DNA of 64,000 nucleotides, from IMG/VR virus record IMGVR_UViG_3300005289_000052, positions 124,001 through 188,000 of that record. The stretch is one strand, 5' to 3'. The position numbers were made by a program, and so were the translations under genes. Positions 2,677-38,279 of this stretch are shown in pieces. Position 1 is the first letter of the stretch; each line of letters begins with the position of its first letter. The notes beneath the pieces are model-generated. The model made no database searches. It worked only from the letters and a program-made list of their open reading frames with translations, and was not told where the DNA came from.

Positions 2677-3126
2677 TCAGAGCTTACGGATCGTCAGATC
2701 CACGGCACCCAGGTAAACCCAGCTACCGTCTTTGGCGAGCAGTTGGAGCGTCTTGCTTTCACCAGCAGCCACCGGCAGGGTCGCATCTTGCTCGAAAGCC
2801 AGTTCACTGGCGATGAGTTTGTAGCGATCTGCAATCAGCGTGATAATGGAGGCCAGAGTGTCACCGGCTTGTAAGGTGTAGGTGGTCGACTTCACGATCT
2901 CCTCCACGTACAGGCGACGGTAGTTCAACGTCTGGGTTCCGTAGAACTCGTTGTTGAGGGTAGCCTCGACAGTGAGGGAAGAGTTCTTGACAGTGATGTC
3001 GCCGCTGCTGTCGATCTGCACCAGGTCTTTGATGACGAAATCATCGAGCGTAAACGACGTGCCGTTGGTCTCGTTGATCTGGTTGATGACGTTCTGAAGC
3101 GGACTTAAAGTGTGATCAACTAGCAC
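2677..3126 (-). CDS. Virion structural protein, same paralog family
   Basis: Start reassigned to GTG 3126 (AGGAG upstream); NSSLTVEA..FYGTQTLNYRRL motif. Confidence 0.65.
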   Translation of the reverse strand: MLVDHTLSPLQNVINQINETNGTSFTLDDFVIKDLVQIDSSGDITVKNSSLTVEATLNNEFYGTQTLNYRRLYVEEIVKSTTYTLQAGDTLASIITLIADRYKLIASELAFEQDATLPVAAGESKTLQLLAKDGSWVYLGAVDLTIRKL

Positions 3127-3231
3127 GTTGATACTCCTGTTGTAGTAGGGACGTCTATAACGATAGGTGCTCGGCGACGTATCATTTGACGGGAGCAATC
3201 CCACCCACTTTCTAAAGCAGGCGTCTTTGCC

Positions 3232-3762
3232 ATGTACCACATTGGAATGAAATCTGTAGAGCAGTTACTCGCTCTACTTAACGACACCAACGGGTTGTCG
3301 TTAACACTTGATGACATCCAGTTCAGTACTCCGGTTGTGCTGACCCCAGAGTCTCAGGTAGGCGACGACAATCCTGCCAACACTGAGATTCTGATTGTTG
3401 CCAAGCCTAATCGCAAGCCGATTGGTGAGGTAAAGGTTCGGTACGATCGGATTGATCTGGCTGACTTTGAAACTCTGCGTGACCCGACTGAGATCGAGGT
3501 TACACTCCCCCTGACCCATGCTCGATTAATGGAAGCTTTCAATATCCATTACGGTTCCGCTCTGGAACTGGAAGACATTGACGTCACCACTGTCCTACCT
3601 GAGGACATCGACGAGGAAACTTTCGTTGAGCTGAAAGCCTCTACAGGCTCGCTAGCTTATCGAGGAGAGATCCTACTGTCTGTGATCCCAGGTACGATCA
3701 AGCTCAGCAATGTGATCATTGTAAGAGCACTCAGTGGCCTTGAGTATATGGGTCGACCTTAA
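3232..3762 (+). CDS. Virion structural protein, same paralog family
   Basis: 176 aa; NTEILIVA..GEVKVRYDRIDL; ends LSNVI..LSGLEY. Confidence 0.65.
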   Translation: MYHIGMKSVEQLLALLNDTNGLSLTLDDIQFSTPVVLTPESQVGDDNPANTEILIVAKPNRKPIGEVKVRYDRIDLADFETLRDPTEIEVTLPLTHARLMEAFNIHYGSALELEDIDVTTVLPEDIDEETFVELKASTGSLAYRGEILLSVIPGTIKLSNVIIVRALSGLEYMGRP

Positions 3763-6977: not shown

Positions 6978-8380
6978 CAGTAATCCCTCAAGCCAACCTT
7001 GATCAGGATCATCAACATTGGCACGTAATAGAACCGTTCCAGGTTAGACCAGTTCTTGGACGTACGAACCAAGTACAACAACACGGTCTTGTCGATGGCC
7101 TCGCCTTGCAACAAGTCCCACAACAGCTTCTCAAGCTTGGAGAACCCTTCTGGAGTGTTCTCGTAGAAAGCTCGGGACAGGACGTAGTAGTCATCCTTGT
7201 TGACACGGTGAATGTCAGGCAGTGCCGCAATCCCTACAGCTTCCTCAGAGGCCGTATGGAAGCCTTTCATCTCTGTCTGCACCAACACACGCCGTAAGTC
7301 GTTATAACGCGACTGGCCGCCTAATAGACGCCCTGGAACCAGAGGATCGTTGTACAGCTCCTGACCATCTACGTGACGCAGGGTAGAACGCTCCGTAGGG
7401 AACACTACTTCCTGCACACCGCTGTAATAGATGCCGTCAAACAGAGGACTCTCGTCGAACTGTCGGAAGGATACCAGTCCAGCAGTCTGGAAGCACAGAT
7501 CAACCATGTCACCATCGGCAGCAATCAAGCAGGTCCAAAGGTTGTTCTCTTTGTACCGGATCGAACGGTCAGTGTTGAGCGCGCGGATCTTCATGATGGT
7601 GTTGTTGTCGGTGTTATCCAACGTCGACAGGAAAGCGGTGACGAAGAACGGGTCGTAGCACACTGTCGGGATGCCATCGGTTTCTTGGTCAGGCAGAATC
7701 AGCGTAGCGTACTCGGTGTTATAGAAGTCGACCAGATACTGGTTCAACATCTTTTTGTAACCGGCGTTCAGAGAAGCGAGTTGTTCAAACTCACTGGTGG
7801 CGATCACTGGGTTCTGACCGTAGTAAATGAAGTCACGAACGAACGTGGTATCCTTCACTACTTTGCGACCGAGATCGTCCCGGTACTGCTTGGTCAGGTA
7901 ATCACGCATGACGTAGTCGATGGTGTAGACTGCGTCTTTGAACACTGCTTTCTTTTCAGAGCGAGTGATCGTGAACACACCTACTTGACCATCACCCACG
8001 TCAGCGAGGAAGATGTCGCCTTGGTTAGGTTTGGTGCCTCCGTAGATGGTAGCCGAACCGTTGATCACCGTATTGCGATCTGCGTCCTGTTGCTGATACG
8101 TCAGCGGTGAGGTCACCTTCAATTCCAAGTGACGAATCAACTTGTATTGTTGGTACACCGCTTTCTGCGTCAATTGCAGGTCGGATGTTTCGTTGTCCAG
8201 ATCGAGGATCTGGTTGTAGTAGTCAACGGTCCAGCTAGCACCTTCAACGTGCGTCAGTAACGCAGTCTGAGGAATGTAGCGAGAGTCGACCACCTGATTG
8301 CGGACTTCGGGAGCCACAGCAATCGGTTCAACCGGTTTAGCCTTGGGGGGCAAACCCTTGTTGGAATCTAAGATTGGCAT
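6977..8380 (-). CDS. Virion structural (putative neck) protein (phiKZ gp99 position)
   Basis: 467 aa, coupled to neighbours; synteny. Confidence 0.55.
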   Translation of the reverse strand: MPILDSNKGLPPKAKPVEPIAVAPEVRNQVVDSRYIPQTALLTHVEGASWTVDYYNQILDLDNETSDLQLTQKAVYQQYKLIRHLELKVTSPLTYQQQDADRNTVINGSATIYGGTKPNQGDIFLADVGDGQVGVFTITRSEKKAVFKDAVYTIDYVMRDYLTKQYRDDLGRKVVKDTTFVRDFIYYGQNPVIATSEFEQLASLNAGYKKMLNQYLVDFYNTEYATLILPDQETDGIPTVCYDPFFVTAFLSTLDNTDNNTIMKIRALNTDRSIRYKENNLWTCLIAADGDMVDLCFQTAGLVSFRQFDESPLFDGIYYSGVQEVVFPTERSTLRHVDGQELYNDPLVPGRLLGGQSRYNDLRRVLVQTEMKGFHTASEEAVGIAALPDIHRVNKDDYYVLSRAFYENTPEGFSKLEKLLWDLLQGEAIDKTVLLYLVRTSKNWSNLERFYYVPMLMILIKVGLRDY

Positions 8381-9885
8381 TAGGGTTTTCCTCTCTTAGC
8401 GATGATACCGGTAACGCCTACCGTGTACATCCGTCTGACTTGGGATTCCTTCTTCTTGTTGATGAGGTCTTTCAGCCAATCGATTGGGAAGATCTCACCG
8501 CCAATGAGTGGAGGTAGGGGTTTCTTACGAGGGTACAGAGTCTTGATGACTTCGATAGCGAACTCACCTTCCTTACGGATACGATCAATGGCCTCTGGAC
8601 TCAGGACTGACAGATCAGTCACGATAGCGAAACGCAAGTGGTACACGTAACGCGGGTTGAGATCCACTGACGCAGTCAAGTTGCCATCTGCATCCATGAT
8701 GACCGTACCGTCTGGCATCGGCTTACCCCAACGGTACAAACCGAAGTGGAAGATCGAATCGTACAGGCGGTTGATATACGGCCACTCTTTCTTCAAGAAC
8801 TTCAAGGTAGCAGGACTGAATTCAAAGTCCCCCAGCTCGGAGATGTTGAAGAGTTCACCACGATCCTCACCAACACCCACCAGGACGTCCAGCATGCTCG
8901 CTGTGCGCGAGTGCGTCCATTCAGGTACCCAGTCATCGAAGACGGGAATACGGTTGCCCTGGAGCGGCTGAGCGCGTTCCTTATAGAGGTTGGTGAACTG
9001 ATCGTAGTAGTAACGATCGTTAGCAGGTCGGCGAGCTTGTTTGATCAGCTCGTATACCGAGTACTCACTGCGGTACTTGACGTCAATCAGTTGGTTGTGG
9101 ATACAGACTGGGTAATGGAATTGAACACCCACTACTTTGTCGTACTGGAACGTGTAATCGAATCCAGTTTCCCACGGAGCACCATCACCAGCCTTAGAAC
9201 CTTTCTCTGGCTGCGCTACGAAGTTAAAGCCACCGACGATACCTACTTGACGCTCAGTGATTGCCATGATGGGCTGAGTGCCTGCTTGGGTAGTCAGTTG
9301 GGTAGCGCGACCAGTGATGTGGTCCTTCACCCACTTACCGAGTTCTTCACCGTAAGGTTCCACTCGCTCACGCATCTCAAAGATCTCGTGAAGAATGATT
9401 GCCACCACGTCAGGGACAGGATAGTGGTAGTCCATTTGATGGAGTAGTTCTACCCGACCTTGTGAACTGCGTACTCGAAACTCATCACGCCACCGCTCTG
9501 CCATGGTTCGGTCTGGGGCACGGTAACGGAAGTTGATAGTCACTTCACATTGTACGTAGATCGGCTTAACGTAAACGTCGAGCTTCTGGTCGTAGAAAAT
9601 AAAAGGTACGTTGGGCCGCTTCACTGCACTCGACAGTGTGCGGTCTTCAATGTACTGTTCGTCGGCTTCGATGTTGATACGACCATTGAACGGGAACTTG
9701 TTCTGAATCCCGTTGGTCGTCATCGTAGAGCCTGGTTGGAATTGAGACTCGGCTGCTCCGAAGAACTCAAAACCCGTATCCTCAGGAAGCCTCATAATGC
9801 CAATGAGCTGTTTCGCTACCTGGACAATAGCTGGACGGGTAATGGAGTTATACGTCTCTGGTAGTTCAACGACAATATTGGGCAT
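8380..9885 (-). CDS. Virion structural (putative neck/tail-terminator) protein (phiKZ gp98 position)
   Basis: Start reassigned to ATG 9885 (MPNIVVELP) with GGAG SD; 501 aa. Confidence 0.55.
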   Translation of the reverse strand: MPNIVVELPETYNSITRPAIVQVAKQLIGIMRLPEDTGFEFFGAAESQFQPGSTMTTNGIQNKFPFNGRINIEADEQYIEDRTLSSAVKRPNVPFIFYDQKLDVYVKPIYVQCEVTINFRYRAPDRTMAERWRDEFRVRSSQGRVELLHQMDYHYPVPDVVAIILHEIFEMRERVEPYGEELGKWVKDHITGRATQLTTQAGTQPIMAITERQVGIVGGFNFVAQPEKGSKAGDGAPWETGFDYTFQYDKVVGVQFHYPVCIHNQLIDVKYRSEYSVYELIKQARRPANDRYYYDQFTNLYKERAQPLQGNRIPVFDDWVPEWTHSRTASMLDVLVGVGEDRGELFNISELGDFEFSPATLKFLKKEWPYINRLYDSIFHFGLYRWGKPMPDGTVIMDADGNLTASVDLNPRYVYHLRFAIVTDLSVLSPEAIDRIRKEGEFAIEVIKTLYPRKKPLPPLIGGEIFPIDWLKDLINKKKESQVRRMYTVGVTGIIAKRGKP

Positions 9886-33032: not shown

Positions 33033-33473
33033 TCAGAAAAGCAGTACGTCAACCGGCAATTCTGTTCCGCCCAGACACTCTTCGACCAAAGGCTTGAAGA
33101 CCTTGACGAAGTCGAGCTGACCGTAGCCACAACCCAGAGCAGGGATTCCCAGTTCAGTGATACCCAGCTCTTTATACCGCGCTACCAGATCCTTGAACCC
33201 AGCTTCGAGATATTCCTTCTTACTCGGTTTGCTCCAGTGATGCTTCGTGGGGAAGAGCAACACTTGGAACGGTCCCGCATTGTAGACCACCAGCTTCCCA
33301 ACGGTTAAGTCCCCCGAGCGCAAGGCAGCTTGATAGAACTCCAGCAACCCCGGAATCCTGATCTTGAACTGCAACGCCAAACCATTACCCAAAGTCCCCG
33401 CAGTGTTAACAGGACAGGCAATGGTCTGGAGTCCACTCGAGAACAAGTCACCCTCACCCATGAAACGGATCAT
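33033..33473 (-). CDS. Macrodomain protein, DarG/TARG1-like
   Basis: GDLF, PVNTAGTLGNGLA, FPTK.HW, PALGCGYGQL. Confidence 0.85.
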   Translation of the reverse strand: MIRFMGEGDLFSSGLQTIACPVNTAGTLGNGLALQFKIRIPGLLEFYQAALRSGDLTVGKLVVYNAGPFQVLLFPTKHHWSKPSKKEYLEAGFKDLVARYKELGITELGIPALGCGYGQLDFVKVFKPLVEECLGGTELPVDVLLF

Positions 33474-33886
33474 TAAGCTTTCCTCGTACTCTGATTCTGT
33501 TGGAGCTGACGAATCTGCTGTTCCGTAGGCAGGGTAGCCCGGTTAGCGTCTTCGGCAGTGATTCGCAGGATCAGTCGATGAATCTCTCGAGGTAAGTTCA
33601 AGAACTCAACGACAGTGAAGCCCCAGCGCTTATAAATCTCGTTGACGTTGTACTGATAGATCGCTCGATAAAGACCACCGTATTCGTGGTAGTCTTCTTT
33701 GTCGAAACGGGCCGCCAATGCTAACGGACGAGACTTATCATTGATGTGGTCGTAAATCCCATAATCAATGTCGTATGCGTCACGCAATACAAGTTGCGCT
33801 GAGATCCCGTCGAGTTTGCCTGAGGTTTCCAAGGCTCGCTCGACTTGACCTTTCTCCCCGACGCGGTTCAGACCGAAGCCTGGCAT
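33473..33886 (-). CDS. Probable -1 frameshift extension of 33925..35484 (tail chaperone T/E'-like)
   Basis: No SD at ATG 33886; the frame stays open upstream through the T8 run; WGFTVVEFLNLP motif. Confidence 0.55.
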   Translation of the reverse strand: MPGFGLNRVGEKGQVERALETSGKLDGISAQLVLRDAYDIDYGIYDHINDKSRPLALAARFDKEDYHEYGGLYRAIYQYNVNEIYKRWGFTVVEFLNLPREIHRLILRITAEDANRATLPTEQQIRQLQQNQSTRKA

Positions 33887-33924
33887 CGCGACGTGTCTGT
33901 CGTTGTGCTCTCTGATCTCCGGGT

Positions 33925-35484
33925 CTATTGTAAGAGGGAGACTTTTGAAAGGACTTTGTTGATGCGTTGGGAGAGCATGAAAAAAAACACTCGACTCACA
34001 TCCAGAGGGATGATGTGAGGGTGGCCTTTATGCTCTGCCGACATCTGCGGGAAGTTGCAGGCCGGGCAGTTGTGACGTGGCAAACCGACGAGGCTGATGG
34101 TGGCGTCATCGATGAACTTACCGATTTCTTCCACGAACCGATTGCGCAGTTCTTCGTTGGTCGAGAACATCGACATCAGACCTTCGATGGTCTCACGGTC
34201 AGTACCCATCTGAGTAGAACCGTCACCCAGGTGCATCTCACCGACCCAGTGGCCGTATTGACGCATGGTCGACAGGCGACCCTGGTTGCTGATGTAGGAA
34301 TCGCGCTCGTCGCCCTTGAGTGGGACTTGGAATGCGTTCTCCATCATGTCGATGATACCGCCGATCCAGGAGTAACCCGAATCTTCGTACTGTTGCAGGT
34401 TCGGTACGAACAGCGTAGCCGCTACGACTTCGGTCAGTTGCACTTGGCGCTGGCCGCCGCGAGTGTGTTCCGATTCGTAACGCTTGATGTCGTCATCGGT
34501 CATGCGAGCTTTACGCTGTTGCATGCGACGCTTCTGCCACTGGGTCAGCGACGACTTGTCGGTGTACACCAGTTTGCCCAGGTCGAGCATTTCCTTGATC
34601 ACGAACTTGCAAGACGCGTCGGTGTTGACGCACGCCTGAGCGTACGGGTAACCGTTCGGGTACATTGCCAGAGCCAGACCCCACAGGATGGTCGGGATGT
34701 CGGTGACCTTGATGATCGACTTGAGGTAGTCGACGCCCATTTCTTTCGCGTTGGTTTCGAAGACGTATTCGAACGCGAAGTTGAGCAGGTAGTTGATCTG
34801 GTACACCGAAGTGTTCGAGAACAACAGACCGTTGGTGAAACGCCCGAGGGTGATCTTGTCGTTGGCGATACGACGTTCAAGCTCGAGGATCGCAGCTTCT
34901 GGCGGGTTCTTGAAGCTCAGCCAGATACCGGTGTGCCACAGTGGAACAGACACGATCGAACCCATGCCGGTCATTGCAGCAGCGTAGATCTGCGCGCGCT
35001 CACCCGTCAGAGCACCACCGCCAGCATCGAAGCGAGGACGGGAAGCAGCCAGCTTCTGACCTTCTACTTCAATGTACTGTGCCCACTCGGAACCTTCGCG
35101 GTTCATCGAAGCAGCCAGCGGGTTACCGCGCATCAGGGTGTTCTGACCATCACGCAGGGTTTGGGTCCACAGGCGAGTAGCCGGGTCACCAGCAGCGTTG
35201 ATGTTCGGGTAGTTATCGATCAGCGCACCCAGGTCGAATGCGTCACCACCGAGCAGACGCAGAGTGGAGTTCTCGGCCTCGTAGTCGATGTACTGGAGTT
35301 CTTTGTCAGTCGGCTTACGCGAGTGAGGGAACTCTTGGGTGACGTTGTCGTTGTGGGTCTTCGCCTGATAGTCATGGCTCTCGGACGTTGGGTCCAGGCC
35401 AGCTTTGGCGGTGTCGCTTACCGGCGCGGCTTGTTCAGCATTGTCTGCTGGGATTTGACCTTGACCGTCATCATTGATAGGCAT
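33925..35484 (-). CDS. Conserved protein (phiKZ gp77-like), putative tail/baseplate assembly chaperone
   Basis: 519 aa, AAGGAG SD; C-x6-C..LDLGKL and C-terminal CPAC, reminiscent of T4 gp26/gp51-type chaperones (inference). Confidence 0.55.
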   Translation of the reverse strand: MPINDDGQGQIPADNAEQAAPVSDTAKAGLDPTSESHDYQAKTHNDNVTQEFPHSRKPTDKELQYIDYEAENSTLRLLGGDAFDLGALIDNYPNINAAGDPATRLWTQTLRDGQNTLMRGNPLAASMNREGSEWAQYIEVEGQKLAASRPRFDAGGGALTGERAQIYAAAMTGMGSIVSVPLWHTGIWLSFKNPPEAAILELERRIANDKITLGRFTNGLLFSNTSVYQINYLLNFAFEYVFETNAKEMGVDYLKSIIKVTDIPTILWGLALAMYPNGYPYAQACVNTDASCKFVIKEMLDLGKLVYTDKSSLTQWQKRRMQQRKARMTDDDIKRYESEHTRGGQRQVQLTEVVAATLFVPNLQQYEDSGYSWIGGIIDMMENAFQVPLKGDERDSYISNQGRLSTMRQYGHWVGEMHLGDGSTQMGTDRETIEGLMSMFSTNEELRNRFVEEIGKFIDDATISLVGLPRHNCPACNFPQMSAEHKGHPHIIPLDVSRVFFFMLSQRINKVLSKVSLLQ

Positions 35485-35494
35485 TTACGGCTCC

Positions 35495-36007
35495 TTACAG
35501 GGACGACAGTTCAGGGGTAGCGACGGCCGCCGGAGTCGGCAGGGTAATCGACGCGGTCACATCGGCAGGCTGGAAGAAACCGGTAACGTTGAACGCACCT
35601 GGGATCACTACCAATTGATATGACGCGATCCATTCACTGTATTCCTCAGCGATGGTCAGCACGGCAGCCAGCAGGTCTTCTTGGACCAGAGTCGGGTTGC
35701 CTTGTTGGCTACGAGCCAGTTCCACGTGTTTGGCGTGGATGGCATCGAGGCGCACTTTGTAAGCTTGCATGTCGTTGTTGAGAACCTCAACAGCGGCCAG
35801 CAGGCCCTTCGGATCTTTCACCGCACGCTTCACCAGCTCTTTGTTACGGATCAGGATCAGGGCGTTGGATGGGCTAACCCGCAGTGCGTTGCACTCGGCC
35901 AGCAGTTCATCGAGACCCATCCATACGGACAAGCCTTCGTTATGGGCCTGGAGTTGGGCCACATTATTCGGACCACGATAGCGTGGACTCTGTTGCGAAT
36001 TCGACAT
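35495..36007 (-). CDS. Hypothetical helical protein
   Basis: 170 aa, CAGGA SD. Confidence 0.65.
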   Translation of the reverse strand: MSNSQQSPRYRGPNNVAQLQAHNEGLSVWMGLDELLAECNALRVSPSNALILIRNKELVKRAVKDPKGLLAAVEVLNNDMQAYKVRLDAIHAKHVELARSQQGNPTLVQEDLLAAVLTIAEEYSEWIASYQLVVIPGAFNVTGFFQPADVTASITLPTPAAVATPELSSL

Positions 36008-36114: not shown

Positions 36115-36969
36115 ATGACTATTGATGAACTTGAAGTCTTCCTTGATCAGCGTGTTTCACCAGAGGCGACTGAGTCACTGATTGACTGTGCTCGCGTAAT
36201 GTGTGAATCCGGTTTGACCAGTCACCTTGACGACATTGACGACCTCATCGCTTTAGAGGATAACGTCGGGCGTGACGTCACCGTGTCTCGGATCAGAAAC
36301 TATCTGGAAGACGCACTAGAAGCATGTGTGAACCAGTTCGGTGTTGAGCTGCAACAAGGCATCGACATCAACCTGCGACACCTGACAGCACTGCAACGCG
36401 GGATCAACCAGATCACTGACTTCGAGGACATCGAGACCTTAGAAGCTTACTGTCTGTCGGAAGAAGATCCCGAACAACGTTTGGCTGACATGATGGAGCT
36501 GCTCACCGAATACACGTGGGCTGACTACCTACTGTTTATTCAGACCGTCACTCCTTCGTTCTTCAAACGGGTGCTGGAGCAGATCACCAAGCCCGATAGC
36601 TTGGAAGAGATCGACAACACTGGTAATGCGATTCTGTTGCGTACCAAGTCGTTGTTGCTCAAGGTACAAAAGCCTTGGTTGATCGACGAGATCGAAGACG
36701 GTGCTACGCTGGGCTTGTCCCTCGATGCAATGATCATCCGTTTCCGGGCTCGCTACGAAGTAGCATTGGCTCAAACTATGGAGTGGAACCGTAAGCCACA
36801 ACTGTTGGCTGAACAGTACATGCTCTATATCTTGGCCTCTGACGTCCCGGATGACAAACTGCTGGAGGCTTCACAGACCCAAGCAGAGAACGTGATTCAC
36901 CACATGCCAACTCTGTCGGCTGTGTTGCGTCATTGCCAAGAACTCTTAAGCCAGGTGCCTTCTAAATGA
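36115..36969 (+). CDS. Conserved acidic protein (phiKZ gp79 position)
   Basis: 284 aa, coupled by ATGA to the vRNAP subunit. Confidence 0.6.
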   Translation: MTIDELEVFLDQRVSPEATESLIDCARVMCESGLTSHLDDIDDLIALEDNVGRDVTVSRIRNYLEDALEACVNQFGVELQQGIDINLRHLTALQRGINQITDFEDIETLEAYCLSEEDPEQRLADMMELLTEYTWADYLLFIQTVTPSFFKRVLEQITKPDSLEEIDNTGNAILLRTKSLLLKVQKPWLIDEIEDGATLGLSLDAMIIRFRARYEVALAQTMEWNRKPQLLAEQYMLYILASDVPDDKLLEASQTQAENVIHHMPTLSAVLRHCQELLSQVPSK

Positions 36970-38279
36970 AAGTAGCCGATTACTACTTGGCGGCCTTGAA
37001 TGCTGGCGCCTATAAAAAGAAGATCTGGGTACTGAGCTTATTCAGTCTTCTGGTGGAGCCTAAAGCCTACCGTTTCCCTTACGAGATCGTGAAGACCGAG
37101 AAGAACGTATTCTTCCGCAACCCAGAGGACTTGGATGACCTCGTGTTGTTGGACGATGCCCTCGTGTCACGCCCTGTGCTCACGTTTAAGGACAAGCTCC
37201 AGATCACCCCTGATCGTGTACCGAACTTGGCTGCACCGATCACTACGACCGCTGGGAACCTGTTGTTCAACTTCTATGTCCTGATCTACTCGATGGGCAA
37301 GAAGATCCCGTACATGGAAGGACGTCTGACACCAAAGATGGTTGAAGGACTGATCCAACCGCGCTTGACTTCCAATCCAGTCAACAACGGTGAGAACTAC
37401 GACCCCAACGATCTGAACCCGATCTACGTTTCAGAGTACAAGAAGTTCAACCGTGCGATGTTTGCACTGATGGGCTTCACACAGCTCTGTGTGCCCTCTG
37501 CTACGCCTCGGACGATGTCGACTGACCCTCGTATCCCTGAGATCCGAAACAAGCTGGTAGAGAAGTACAAGGACCGTCTGAACGACCCGGCTGTGATCTC
37601 CATGATCGATGCTGAGTTGATCAAGATCGACAAACAGTGGATGGCCGATGACCCGGATGGTGGCGCTGGCTTCTACGTGAACGAGAACAAGTCCTACGAC
37701 GTTGTGCGTAAGAAAGTGTTCCTGATGCACGGTGCTGAGGCTGGCTTCCAAGAAGGTACGGACGTTGACTTCATTAAGAACTCCCTGAACGAAGGCTGGG
37801 AGATCGAGAAGCTTCCGTCCATGGTCAACTCCCTGCGGGAAGGTTCGTACAACCGTGGTCGAGACACAGCGCTCGGCGGTGAGGCTGTAAAGTTCCTGGG
37901 TCGAGTTTTCCAGAACACTGTGATTGCAGAGAAAGACTGCGGCGCCACTATGGGCTGGGACAAGGAAGTAACAGAGGACAACTACAAGGAATTTGCTGGC
38001 TTCTATGAGAACACTCCGAAAGGACCTGTGATCCTGGAAGAAGCTTACCTCAAAGGTAAGATCGGCAAAACTATCAACATGAGAACACCCATGTTGTGTA
38101 GGACTCCGAAAACCGGCTTCTGCGAATGCTGTATGGGCGCAAAGAACGCCCTCAACCCAACCTCTCTCGGATTGTTGGCAGCAGACGTAGGTTCCCAGAT
38201 GATGGGCATCTTCATGGGTGCGATGCACGGTAAGTCCTTGAAGACCGCAAAGTACGACTACTTGAAGTCTATCTTCTGA
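36966..38279 (+). CDS. Virion RNA polymerase beta'-like subunit (phiKZ gp80-like)
   Basis: SLREGSYNRGRDTALGG bridge-helix-like region, EKDCG, RTPMLC..FCECCMG Zn site, SQMMGIFMGAMHG trigger-loop-like region. Confidence 0.85.
   Translation: MKVADYYLAALNAGAYKKKIWVLSLFSLLVEPKAYRFPYEIVKTEKNVFFRNPEDLDDLVLLDDALVSRPVLTFKDKLQITPDRVPNLAAPITTTAGNLLFNFYVLIYSMGKKIPYMEGRLTPKMVEGLIQPRLTSNPVNNGENYDPNDLNPIYVSEYKKFNRAMFALMGFTQLCVPSATPRTMSTDPRIPEIRNKLVEKYKDRLNDPAVISMIDAELIKIDKQWMADDPDGGAGFYVNENKSYDVVRKKVFLMHGAEAGFQEGTDVDFIKNSLNEGWEIEKLPSMVNSLREGSYNRGRDTALGGEAVKFLGRVFQNTVIAEKDCGATMGWDKEVTEDNYKEFAGFYENTPKGPVILEEAYLKGKIGKTINMRTPMLCRTPKTGFCECCMGAKNALNPTSLGLLAADVGSQMMGIFMGAMHGKSLKTAKYDYLKSIF

Follow-up and report, generated by a model that had tools for sequence, protein, structure and literature searches.

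A run of eight T's near the end of a gene resembling phiKZ gp77 very probably allows about 170 extra residues to be added in the -1 frame, and the same arrangement is kept in all 37 related jumbo-phage loci that we examined, phiKZ included. In each of these loci a T5-T9 run lies at the aligned Phe-Phe site of the family, a 0-frame stop follows 8-37 codons later, and the -1 frame stays open for 152-186 codons and encodes one conserved domain. We infer that a recoded fusion of about 670 aa is made beside the 519-aa product of the annotated frame. None of the 25 GenBank records inspected annotates the event, and literature searches on frameshifting, on the gene names, and on T4 gp26/gp51 found no description of it in the library searched; "gp77" in the Goslar, PCH45, and PhiPA3 papers refers to other genes.

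The analyzed window is a stretch of 64,000 nucleotides from IMG/VR record IMGVR_UViG_3300005289_000052, in which the 519-aa open reading frame (ORF) occupies 35484..33925 on the minus strand and ends with a TAG stop at 33927-33925. Near its end the 0 frame reads GTG TTT TTT TTC ATG, with the T8 run at 33987-33980 and the slippery heptamer T_TTT_TTC at 33985-33979 (0-frame codons F501, F502). The -1 frame opens at 34027, 13 codons before the run, holds no ATG, GTG, or TTG before the ATG at 33886, and runs stop-free into the 137-aa ORF at 33886..33473 (minus strand; stop TAA 33475-33473). After the run, the -1 frame reads FHALPTHQQSPFKSLPLTIDPEIREHNDRHVA. The 20 nt preceding the ATG at 33886 contain no GGAG, GAGG, or AGGA, whereas the start of the gp77-like gene has AAGGAG and that of the Macro gene has GAGGAAAG. 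The main ones of these features had been pointed out in an earlier note made from the sequence alone, and its observation was confirmed in every sequence statement. The note had also stated that the gene otherwise favours TTC for Phe; the bias is stronger than that, since all 16 other Phe codons are TTC, none is TTT, and the longest other T run in the gene is 3.

Between the run and the 0-frame stop (33979-33925, minus strand) the sequence is dual-coding, with the 0 frame encoding the C-terminal helix of the short form (MLSQRINKVLSKVSLLQ) and the -1 frame encoding the start of the linker (HALPTHQQSPFKSLPLT). The following segment at 33924-33887 appears to be an intergenic spacer but is read in the -1 frame as linker codons (IDPEIREHNDRHVA). 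The 137-aa ORF, as a gene caller sees it, corresponds to the C-terminal part of the -1 extension domain; it matched PHROG 12109 (E 2e-21), and its conserved motifs are H..FG, AY(D/E)..YGI, P(L)..., E97, and F..(L)PRE. The 519-aa protein matched PHROG 4585 (E 1e-110) over residues 71-512. Its AF2 model, based on an alignment of database proteins, had a pLDDT of 86 and a pTM of 0.86, with a C-terminal helix at 496-518 that starts at the Phe-Phe site. The predicted long form (35484..33476, minus strand) comprises residues 1-502 in the 0 frame (35484-33979) followed, after a slip back by one base on the T run, by 168 residues in the -1 frame (33979-33476). Its predicted junction peptide is VFFFHALPTHQQSPFK, and the linker region of phiKZ upstream of the annotated start contains SGHILHPNFGYDK.

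To determine whether the arrangement is conserved, which the earlier note had proposed as a check on its reading, we compared the window with 36 other loci from relatives at 20-87% protein identity; a megablast search of the locus against GenBank phages had found nothing. The sample covers phiKZ, PhiPA3, 201phi2-1, Goslar, RAY, phiEaH2, a Seoulvirus, Vibrio, Ralstonia, and Xanthomonas phages, and 12 metagenome contigs. The T run and the -1 relation recurred in every locus. F500 is invariant in the family and F501 nearly so. The +1 frame was open for a much shorter stretch, mostly 1-23 codons and 36-88 codons in the window's clade and five other loci, always under half the -1 value. A canonical in-frame T_TTT_TTN heptamer was present in 29 of 37 loci, two of which (pEa_SNUABM_54 and the locus L033) carry the T_TTT_TTG annotated for P2. 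The other eight have only TTT TTY or T6 without a full heptamer. As the loci share descent, counts of loci overstate their independence. The run is held against codon bias: other Phe codons are TTT in 0/14, 0/15, 0/14, 0/14, 0/13, and 0/13 cases in six GC-rich relatives, and the site is always TTT TTN.

The linker from the run to the first conserved residue took 16 different lengths (15-35 aa), always in frame and with no stops; at least 15 neutral length changes would all keep frame with a probability of about 7e-8. In 23 of 37 loci, the first ATG, GTG, or TTG of the -1 frame lies after the first conserved residue, inside the conserved domain, at codon 84-85 in phiKZ and AH06, 87 in AgentSmith, 67 in the locus L030, and 58 in pEa54. 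Selection was also evident on the 13 linker codons between the 0-frame stop and the downstream ATG within the window's clade, where the window and the close relative L020 differed by 8 synonymous and 0 non-synonymous changes, L020 and a second close relative, L024, by 7 and 0, and the window and L024 by 8 and 1. All eight changes falling on about 20% of sites has a p of about 3e-6. In the dual-coding overlap, synonymous divergence in the -1 frame was depressed (pS 0.08-0.24) relative to the downstream ORF (0.35-0.47) for the close pairs.

These results make it very unlikely that the locus consists of two ordinary genes, with the downstream ORF starting at its own ATG, perhaps by coupling to the nearby stop, and the shared frame inherited by chance. 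The window does have an ATG 38 nt after the 0-frame stop, gene callers find an ORF in every genome, and in 14 of 37 loci a start codon precedes the conserved domain, as in D6 and Psa21 (ATG at codon 18) and RP12 (codon 14). However, the ATG at 33886 lacks a Shine-Dalgarno (SD) sequence and is not conserved even among close relatives: L022 has Leu there, and the database proteins P0095, P0097, P0101, and P0102 start further downstream. In addition, codons upstream of it, with no start before them, are under strong purifying selection, and in 23 loci the conserved N-terminal motifs precede any start. Seven of the eight loci without a full heptamer have a start codon before the conserved domain, so some lineages may also, or instead, initiate independently.

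A homopolymer error, in which the true run would be T9 (or T7) and the locus a single 670-aa gene, is all but excluded. Homopolymers are error-prone, and the RTH11 record has T7 where its relative LucasX has T8 and is annotated with an aberrant 627-aa ORF. However, the 0-frame tail after the run aligns with the tails of every homologue (..FF(T/M)L..Q(R/K)..) and is a confident helix in the model, and the 0-frame stop is kept in 37 loci from independent isolates and assemblies. An independent IMG/VR contig (L023) is identical, and a database cluster at 98% identity (P0001) also has 519 aa. None of 86 homologue clusters carries the extension in frame, the longer ones (627-656 aa) having long N-termini instead, so the short form is kept as well.

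We next searched for elements that might stimulate slippage. RNAalifold on 10 loci gave 0 pairs, and no consistent upstream SD-like motif or hairpin appeared in the 37 loci. The earlier note had proposed a stem between TGCTCTC (33977-33971) and GAGAGCA (33912-33906); both are present and pair in the centroid fold of the window, for which the window-only fold had a z of -2.1, but the stem starts 1 nt after the heptamer, GAGAGCA is missing in the 73% and 65% relatives L021 and L022, and no conserved pairing exists. The stem is thus clade-specific and was rejected as a general element. In the window's clade, the 50 nt after the run are nearly unstructured (-0.6 to -1.2 kcal/mol). Such an element is not obligatory for known phage sites.

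Transcriptional slippage, for which the lack of a detected stimulator speaks, is a possible, though less likely, alternative, in which the host or a phage-encoded RNA polymerase would stutter on the A8 template and add one U, so that a fraction of mRNAs would encode the fusion in a single frame. The proteins would be the same as in the ribosomal model, apart from possibly one extra Phe, and insertion of one base gives exactly the -1 reading. Runs of 7-9 T, which are also substrates for RNA polymerase slippage, occur in 28 of 37 loci, with T8-T9 throughout the window's clade, and the RTH11 run, one base off, shows that the length of the tract is easily miscopied or misread. Slippage at A/T runs of 9 or more is used in Thermus dnaX, IS elements, and Shigella mxiE. 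On the other hand, nine loci have only T5-T6, too short for efficient slippage by known polymerases, yet keep the whole arrangement, and in 29 of 37 loci the run is in the register that gives a proper X_XXY_YYZ heptamer, which transcriptional slippage would not require.

The arrangement was then compared with known recoded genes. In lambda G/GT, a -1 slip near the 3' end of a morphogenesis gene likewise gives a short form and a C-terminally extended form sharing the N-terminal body, the arrangement is conserved across very divergent phages, and the site is reported to need only its slippery sequence. The lambda slip sequence is G_GGA_AAG rather than a U run, however, and the short form is 140 aa rather than 519 aa. 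In P2 E/E+E', the slip occurs on a T run close to the end of the upstream frame, as the earlier note had stated, but E is 91 aa and lies directly before the tape-measure gene T. The note had further suggested that the WGFTVVEFLNLP segment resembles E'/T tails, but this was not significant, with an hhalign probability of 0.6% against both lambda T and P2 E'; the probabilities against lambda G and lambda T were 0.3-0.6%. No Pfam family, including TAC, T, and E, was found for either piece, and Foldseek hits to tail assembly chaperones had E values above 1. The gene does not lie between tube and tape-measure genes, as between V and H in lambda, and is not in a tail module; its neighbours are a gp78-like ORF, a Macro-domain gene, a gp79-like head protein gene, and a virion RNA polymerase subunit gene. 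Membership of the G/GT tail-chaperone families is therefore not shown, although the predicted anatomy of two products sharing an N-terminus through a -1 slip near the 3' end is shared. T7 gene 10A/10B also slips by -1 on Phe codons (UUU UUC type) a few codons before the stop, adding a C-terminal extension in a minority of products, but that is a capsid protein with a short extension, and its site is reported to depend on distant 3' sequence, whereas here the extension is a conserved domain of 170 aa.

By predicted fold only, the 519-aa protein resembles the T4 gp26/gp51 family; T4 gp26 and gp51 both belong to PF12322 and are listed as hub-assembly chaperones (PMC3004832). With this resemblance, the analogy to the tail chaperone pairs remains reasonable. 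Foldseek comparison of our model with predicted models in BFVD found T4-like baseplate hub assembly proteins (E 4e-5 to 5e-3, probability 1.0, TM on target 0.47-0.55), an AFDB "Phage baseplate protein" aligned to residues 225-499 (E 3e-3, TM 0.58), and an Atlas cluster carrying PF12322 gave a TM of 0.48; overall, the similarity covers residues about 175-505. No solved structure matched, as Foldseek against the PDB gave nothing better than E 2.3 and a wide VIA-align search gave a best Z of 5.6, within noise. Neither the window protein nor any of 64 homologues hit PF12322, even at E up to 1, although one member hit PHROG 150 "baseplate hub" at E 0.009. hhalign of the family profile against single T4 gp26 and gp51 sequences gave insignificant probabilities of 4-6%, aligning only the CPxC stretch, a motif that lies near the C-terminus in gp26 as in gp77. 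T4 gene 26 also yields two nested products (26 and 26'), but by internal initiation rather than frameshifting; the protein here is twice as long, and the T4 genes sit beside hub genes 27-29, whereas this one sits beside a head protein gene and a virion RNA polymerase gene. As indirect observations on absence from virions, 201phi2-1 gp135-137 carry no "identified using mass spectrometry" note although gp138 and gp139 do, and Goslar gp81 and gp82 are not mentioned in the virion structure paper. Counting against the reading proposed here, a paper on a phiKZ-like phage lists the homologue among proteins detected early in infection (PMC11849849). For the extension domain, the AF2 model was poor (pLDDT 65, pTM 0.33) and matched only its own family in BFVD, Pfam gave only sub-threshold noise (Gp22 and F-box-like at E above 0.03), and the ESM-Atlas feature neighbours were SLT lytic transglycosylases at a score of 0.75, below the level that shuffled proteins reach, so that lead was dropped.

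Taken together, the gp77-like gene is best explained as a recoded gene that makes two proteins sharing about 500 N-terminal residues, and the interpretation in the earlier note was partly supported, in that the fusion holds up on comparative evidence while the stem and the likeness to E'/T tails do not. In this model, most ribosomes would read through the run in the 0 frame and finish 17 codons later, giving the 519-aa form, whose last 20 or so residues form a C-terminal helix, whereas a minority would slip back one base on the U run, the tRNA-Phe pair moving from UUU UUC to U UUU UU, and would then read a Pro-rich linker and a conserved, mainly helical domain. The 137-aa ORF would be mostly or wholly the tail of this long form and not a free-standing gene. 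Our analysis demonstrates the anatomy, its conservation in 37 loci, purifying selection on linker codons that no start precedes, and codon usage held against bias; as all of this evidence is comparative, the long product itself is inferred, with high confidence. It is likewise inferred, with less assurance, that the slip is ribosomal rather than transcriptional, and that it is of low efficiency, since no stimulator was found. A chaperone function is inferred from predicted fold and by analogy, and we consider it less likely than not: the pair would then work like G/GT or E/E', as a chaperone made in a fixed ratio with a version carrying an extra binding domain.

A broader and tentative reading is that every chimallivirus and allied jumbo phage, phiKZ included, makes an unannotated long form of about 650-850 aa from a core gene by obligatory recoding, and that the short/long pair is the jumbo-phage counterpart of the G/GT and E/E' pairs, built on a gp26/gp51-like body instead of a TAC fold. 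This would tie the unexplained T4 hub chaperones gp26/26' and gp51 to the general rule of a chaperone plus an extended chaperone in a fixed ratio. A more unusual variant is that the slip is made by the phage's own RNA polymerase inside the phage nucleus.

The T run is a warning for homopolymer errors in jumbo-phage assemblies, as in RTH11, and should not be disrupted by codon optimisation in phage engineering. The gp77 gene is family-wide in nucleus-forming jumbo phages, with 219 phage records matching. If the recoding is real, all of those genomes lack one protein and carry a mis-started small ORF, namely 076.4 in phiKZ, gp82 in Goslar, gp266 in RAY, and gp073 in PhiPA3. It would also provide a functional handle on two proteins of unknown function, a second case beside the tail chaperones in which a fixed short:long ratio is set by slippage, and a link to the poorly understood T4 gp26/gp51 hub chaperones.

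Four ORFs run head to tail on the minus strand of the window: a gp78-like ORF (36007..35495, 170 aa), the gp77-like ORF (35484..33925, 519 aa), a 137-aa ORF (33886..33473), and a Macro-domain ORF (33473..33033; Pfam PF01661, E 2e-11). Seventeen codons before its stop, the 519-aa ORF reads GTG TTT TTT TTC ATG, with a run of eight T's (T8) at 33987-33980. The -1 frame opens at 34027, contains no ATG, GTG, or TTG until the ATG at 33886, and is stop-free to 33476. The ATG at 33886 has no Shine-Dalgarno (SD) sequence, whereas both flanking genes have one (AAGGAG before the gp77-like start and GAGGAAAG before the Macro start). The observation made in the earlier note held: its coordinates, its -1 peptide, and the two heptamers of its proposed stem were all correct. 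The gp77-like and 137-aa ORFs belong to separate PHROG families of unknown function (4585 and 12109, respectively), and neither showed a Pfam match. The Macro-domain gene starts in a TAATG overlap (33473-33477) with the stop of the downstream (extension) ORF. The same order, gp77-like, extension, and Macro, recurs in Goslar (gp81-83) and in six of the metagenome loci described below (L026-L031), but it is absent in phiKZ, PhiPA3, and others. Diverging from the gp78/gp77 unit, at 36115-38279 on the plus strand, are a gp79-like ORF (284 aa), whose phiKZ homologue is annotated as a structural head protein, and a 437-aa ORF in the position of the virion RNA polymerase beta' subunit (phiKZ gp80), which together represent the conserved chimallivirus block.

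A tblastn search revealed the 519-aa protein in 219 phage records, all below 60% identity, comprising phiKZ-like and allied jumbo phages of Pseudomonas, Erwinia, Salmonella, Serratia, Ralstonia, Vibrio, Klebsiella, Burkholderia, Xanthomonas, and Escherichia. The closest relatives are uncultivated contigs of 180-240 kb at 65-87% identity, and no isolated phage exceeds 40% identity. We examined 37 loci: the window, 24 GenBank phages, 4 IMG/VR contigs at 65-87% identity (L020, L021, L022, and L024), and 8 metagenome contigs at 35-47% identity. A fifth IMG/VR contig (L023, IMGVR_UViG_3300005289_000052, 243,669 bp, 100% identical over the gene) is the window's own and was not counted. In every locus, a T5-T9 run encodes the invariant Phe-Phe of the family (F500 invariant, F501 in at least 90%), the 0 frame stops 8-37 codons later, the downstream conserved domain lies in the -1 frame, and the -1 frame is open from before the run for 152-186 further codons. 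The +1 frame is open for a much shorter stretch, mostly 1-23 codons and 36-88 in the window's clade and five other loci, always under half the -1 value. One further record, Xanthomonas phage RTH11 (OQ790161), was left out: at about 2714-2720 it has T7 where its relative LucasX has T8, so that the annotated, aberrant 627-aa ORF runs into a third frame, with the normal C-terminal tail in -1 and the extension in -2. This is probably a homopolymer error in the record.

Several lines of evidence indicated translation across the gap rather than two ordinary genes. The number of residues between the run and the first conserved residue of the extension, a His in an H..FG motif, takes 16 different values from 15 to 35, and this linker is always in frame and stop-free; if the spacer were untranslated, 15 or more length changes would all preserve frame with a probability of about 7e-8. 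In 23 of the 37 loci, the first ATG/GTG/TTG of the -1 frame lies after that conserved residue (codon 84-85 in phiKZ and AH06, 87 in AgentSmith, 67 in metagenome locus L030, 58 in pEa54, and 56 in Phabio), and canonical initiation would therefore delete conserved blocks. Annotated starts of the downstream ORF are inconsistent: phiKZ 076.4 (80 aa, 2967-3209 of the locus examined), AH06_283, pEa54_00304, and AgentSmith_12 start 58-87 codons into the conserved domain, the phiKZ ORF being a truncated call, while RAY gp266 (3104-3652 of its locus) is started at a TTG 136 nt inside gp267. The window's ATG is not conserved either, as L022 has Leu there and database proteins of close relatives begin at four different downstream Met residues.

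Selection and codon usage pointed in the same direction. The 13 codons between the 0-frame stop and the ATG, which cannot be reached by any initiator in the window, showed 8 synonymous and 0 non-synonymous differences between the window and L020, 7 and 0 between L020 and L024, and 8 and 1 between the window and L024. In the stretch read in both frames, synonymous divergence was depressed, as expected of a dual-coding overlap. All 16 other Phe codons of the window's gene are TTC, and six GC-rich relatives likewise use no TTT elsewhere, yet the site is always TTT TTN and no other T run in the gene exceeds 3-5 bases. An assembly error did not account for the arrangement, since the 0-frame tail after the run aligns with the tails of all homologues and forms, in the AlphaFold model, a confident C-terminal helix (residues 496-518) that begins at the Phe-Phe. 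None of 86 homologue clusters carries the extension in frame, and both forms therefore appear to be kept by selection.

In the window, the 0-frame codons TTT TTC preceded by T form the heptamer T_TTT_TTC. After a tandem -1 slip, the next codon would be CAT, and the predicted product would be 502 + 168 = 670 aa with the junction VFFF/HALP, as the earlier note had proposed. A canonical T_TTT_TTN heptamer in the right register is present in 29 of 37 loci, two of which have T_TTT_TTG, the sequence at the annotated -1 site of P2 E/E'. The remaining eight loci (FLC9, Noxifer, D6, PhiPA3, PA1C, Psa21, Phabio, and metagenome locus L031) have only TTT TTY or a T6 in another register, where a single-tRNA slip would be needed. 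Seven of these eight also have a start codon ahead of the conserved domain, against 8 of 29 canonical loci. Some lineages may therefore also, or instead, start the domain independently, which hints that part of the PhiPA3/201phi2-1-like Pseudomonas group may be moving towards independent initiation.

No stimulatory element was found. RNAalifold on ten loci predicted no pair, the 50 nt after the run are almost unstructured in the window's clade, and no SD-like motif is conserved upstream across the loci. The stem proposed in the earlier note begins one base after the heptamer; it is present in the window and L020, has one mismatch in L024 (GAGAACA), and is absent in L021 and L022. A modest, unstimulated slip is thus the likeliest mode. 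Slippage of RNA polymerase on T7-T9 runs, adding one U, would give the same protein and cannot be excluded, although the T5-T6 loci and the conserved heptamer register speak for the ribosome.

Structure prediction with a 64-sequence alignment gave a confident model of the 519-aa protein (pLDDT 86, pTM 0.86). Searches with this model found no similar solved structure. Among predicted viral structures, after its own family, the significant matches were proteins of 226-293 aa named T4-like baseplate hub assembly protein or hub subunit (E 4e-5 to 5e-3, probability 1.0, TM on target about 0.5). An AFDB cluster called 'Phage baseplate protein' aligned to residues 225-499, and an ESM-Atlas cluster with PF12322 matched at a TM of 0.48. 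T4 gp26 and gp51 both belong to PF12322 (E 9e-64 and 4e-52; 7803-8429 and 8480-9229 of the T4 locus examined), so these two hub-assembly proteins are paralogues, and the T4 record also shows a nested second product of gene 26, 26'. A review of T4 tail assembly lists both gp26 and gp51 as hub-assembly chaperones and says that gp51 is absent from the particle (PMC3004832). By sequence, however, the link was not significant, and we therefore treat it as a fold-level lead and not as membership.

Four cysteines (C285, C292, C473, and C476), including a CPxC about 45 residues from the C-terminus, are nearly invariant (at least 90% conserved in 64 homologues), which suggests a metal site, possibly for zinc; T4 gp26 has a CPxC at a similar distance from its end. 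The extension is predicted to be a linker followed by a mainly helical domain ending in a long charged helix, although its model is poor (pLDDT 65) and matched only its own family. Consistent with a non-structural assembly factor, the 201phi2-1 record marks gp138 and gp139, but not gp135-137, as found by mass spectrometry, and the Goslar virion structure paper does not mention gp81 or gp82. On the other hand, a paper on the phiKZ-like phage Churi lists the gp77 homologue among proteins detected early in infection (PMC11849849), and the gene lies beside head and RNA polymerase genes, not tail genes.

The earlier note had interpreted the locus as a hidden G/GT-type tail chaperone pair, and this interpretation was only partly supported. 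The inferred event works like lambda G/GT, P2 E/E+E', and T7 10A/10B, in which a -1 slip close to the end of a morphogenesis gene yields a minor, C-terminally extended form. It is not a member of the TAC families, as there is no Pfam or profile similarity (hhalign probability at most 0.6% against lambda G, lambda T, and P2 E') and both the size and the genomic position are wrong. The likeness between WGFTVVEFLNLP and E' noted earlier is the segment that hhalign picks, but at a probability of 0.6%. None of the 25 GenBank records inspected annotates a joined CDS here, full-text literature searches on frameshifting and on the gene names found no description of the event, and the PRFect paper on phage frameshift prediction mentions neither jumbo phages, phiKZ, nor baseplate proteins.

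The arrangement, its conservation in 37 loci, the selection on the linker codons, and the codon usage at the run are shown by the sequences, whereas production of the long form, the mode of slippage, and the function of the proteins are inferred. On this comparative evidence, the recoding itself is very likely, a ribosomal mechanism is favored over a transcriptional one without being secured, and a hub or tail chaperone function remains tentative, being less likely than not. Slips of this type are already known from lambda, P2, and T7, but the one inferred here touches a core gene of a much-studied phage family.
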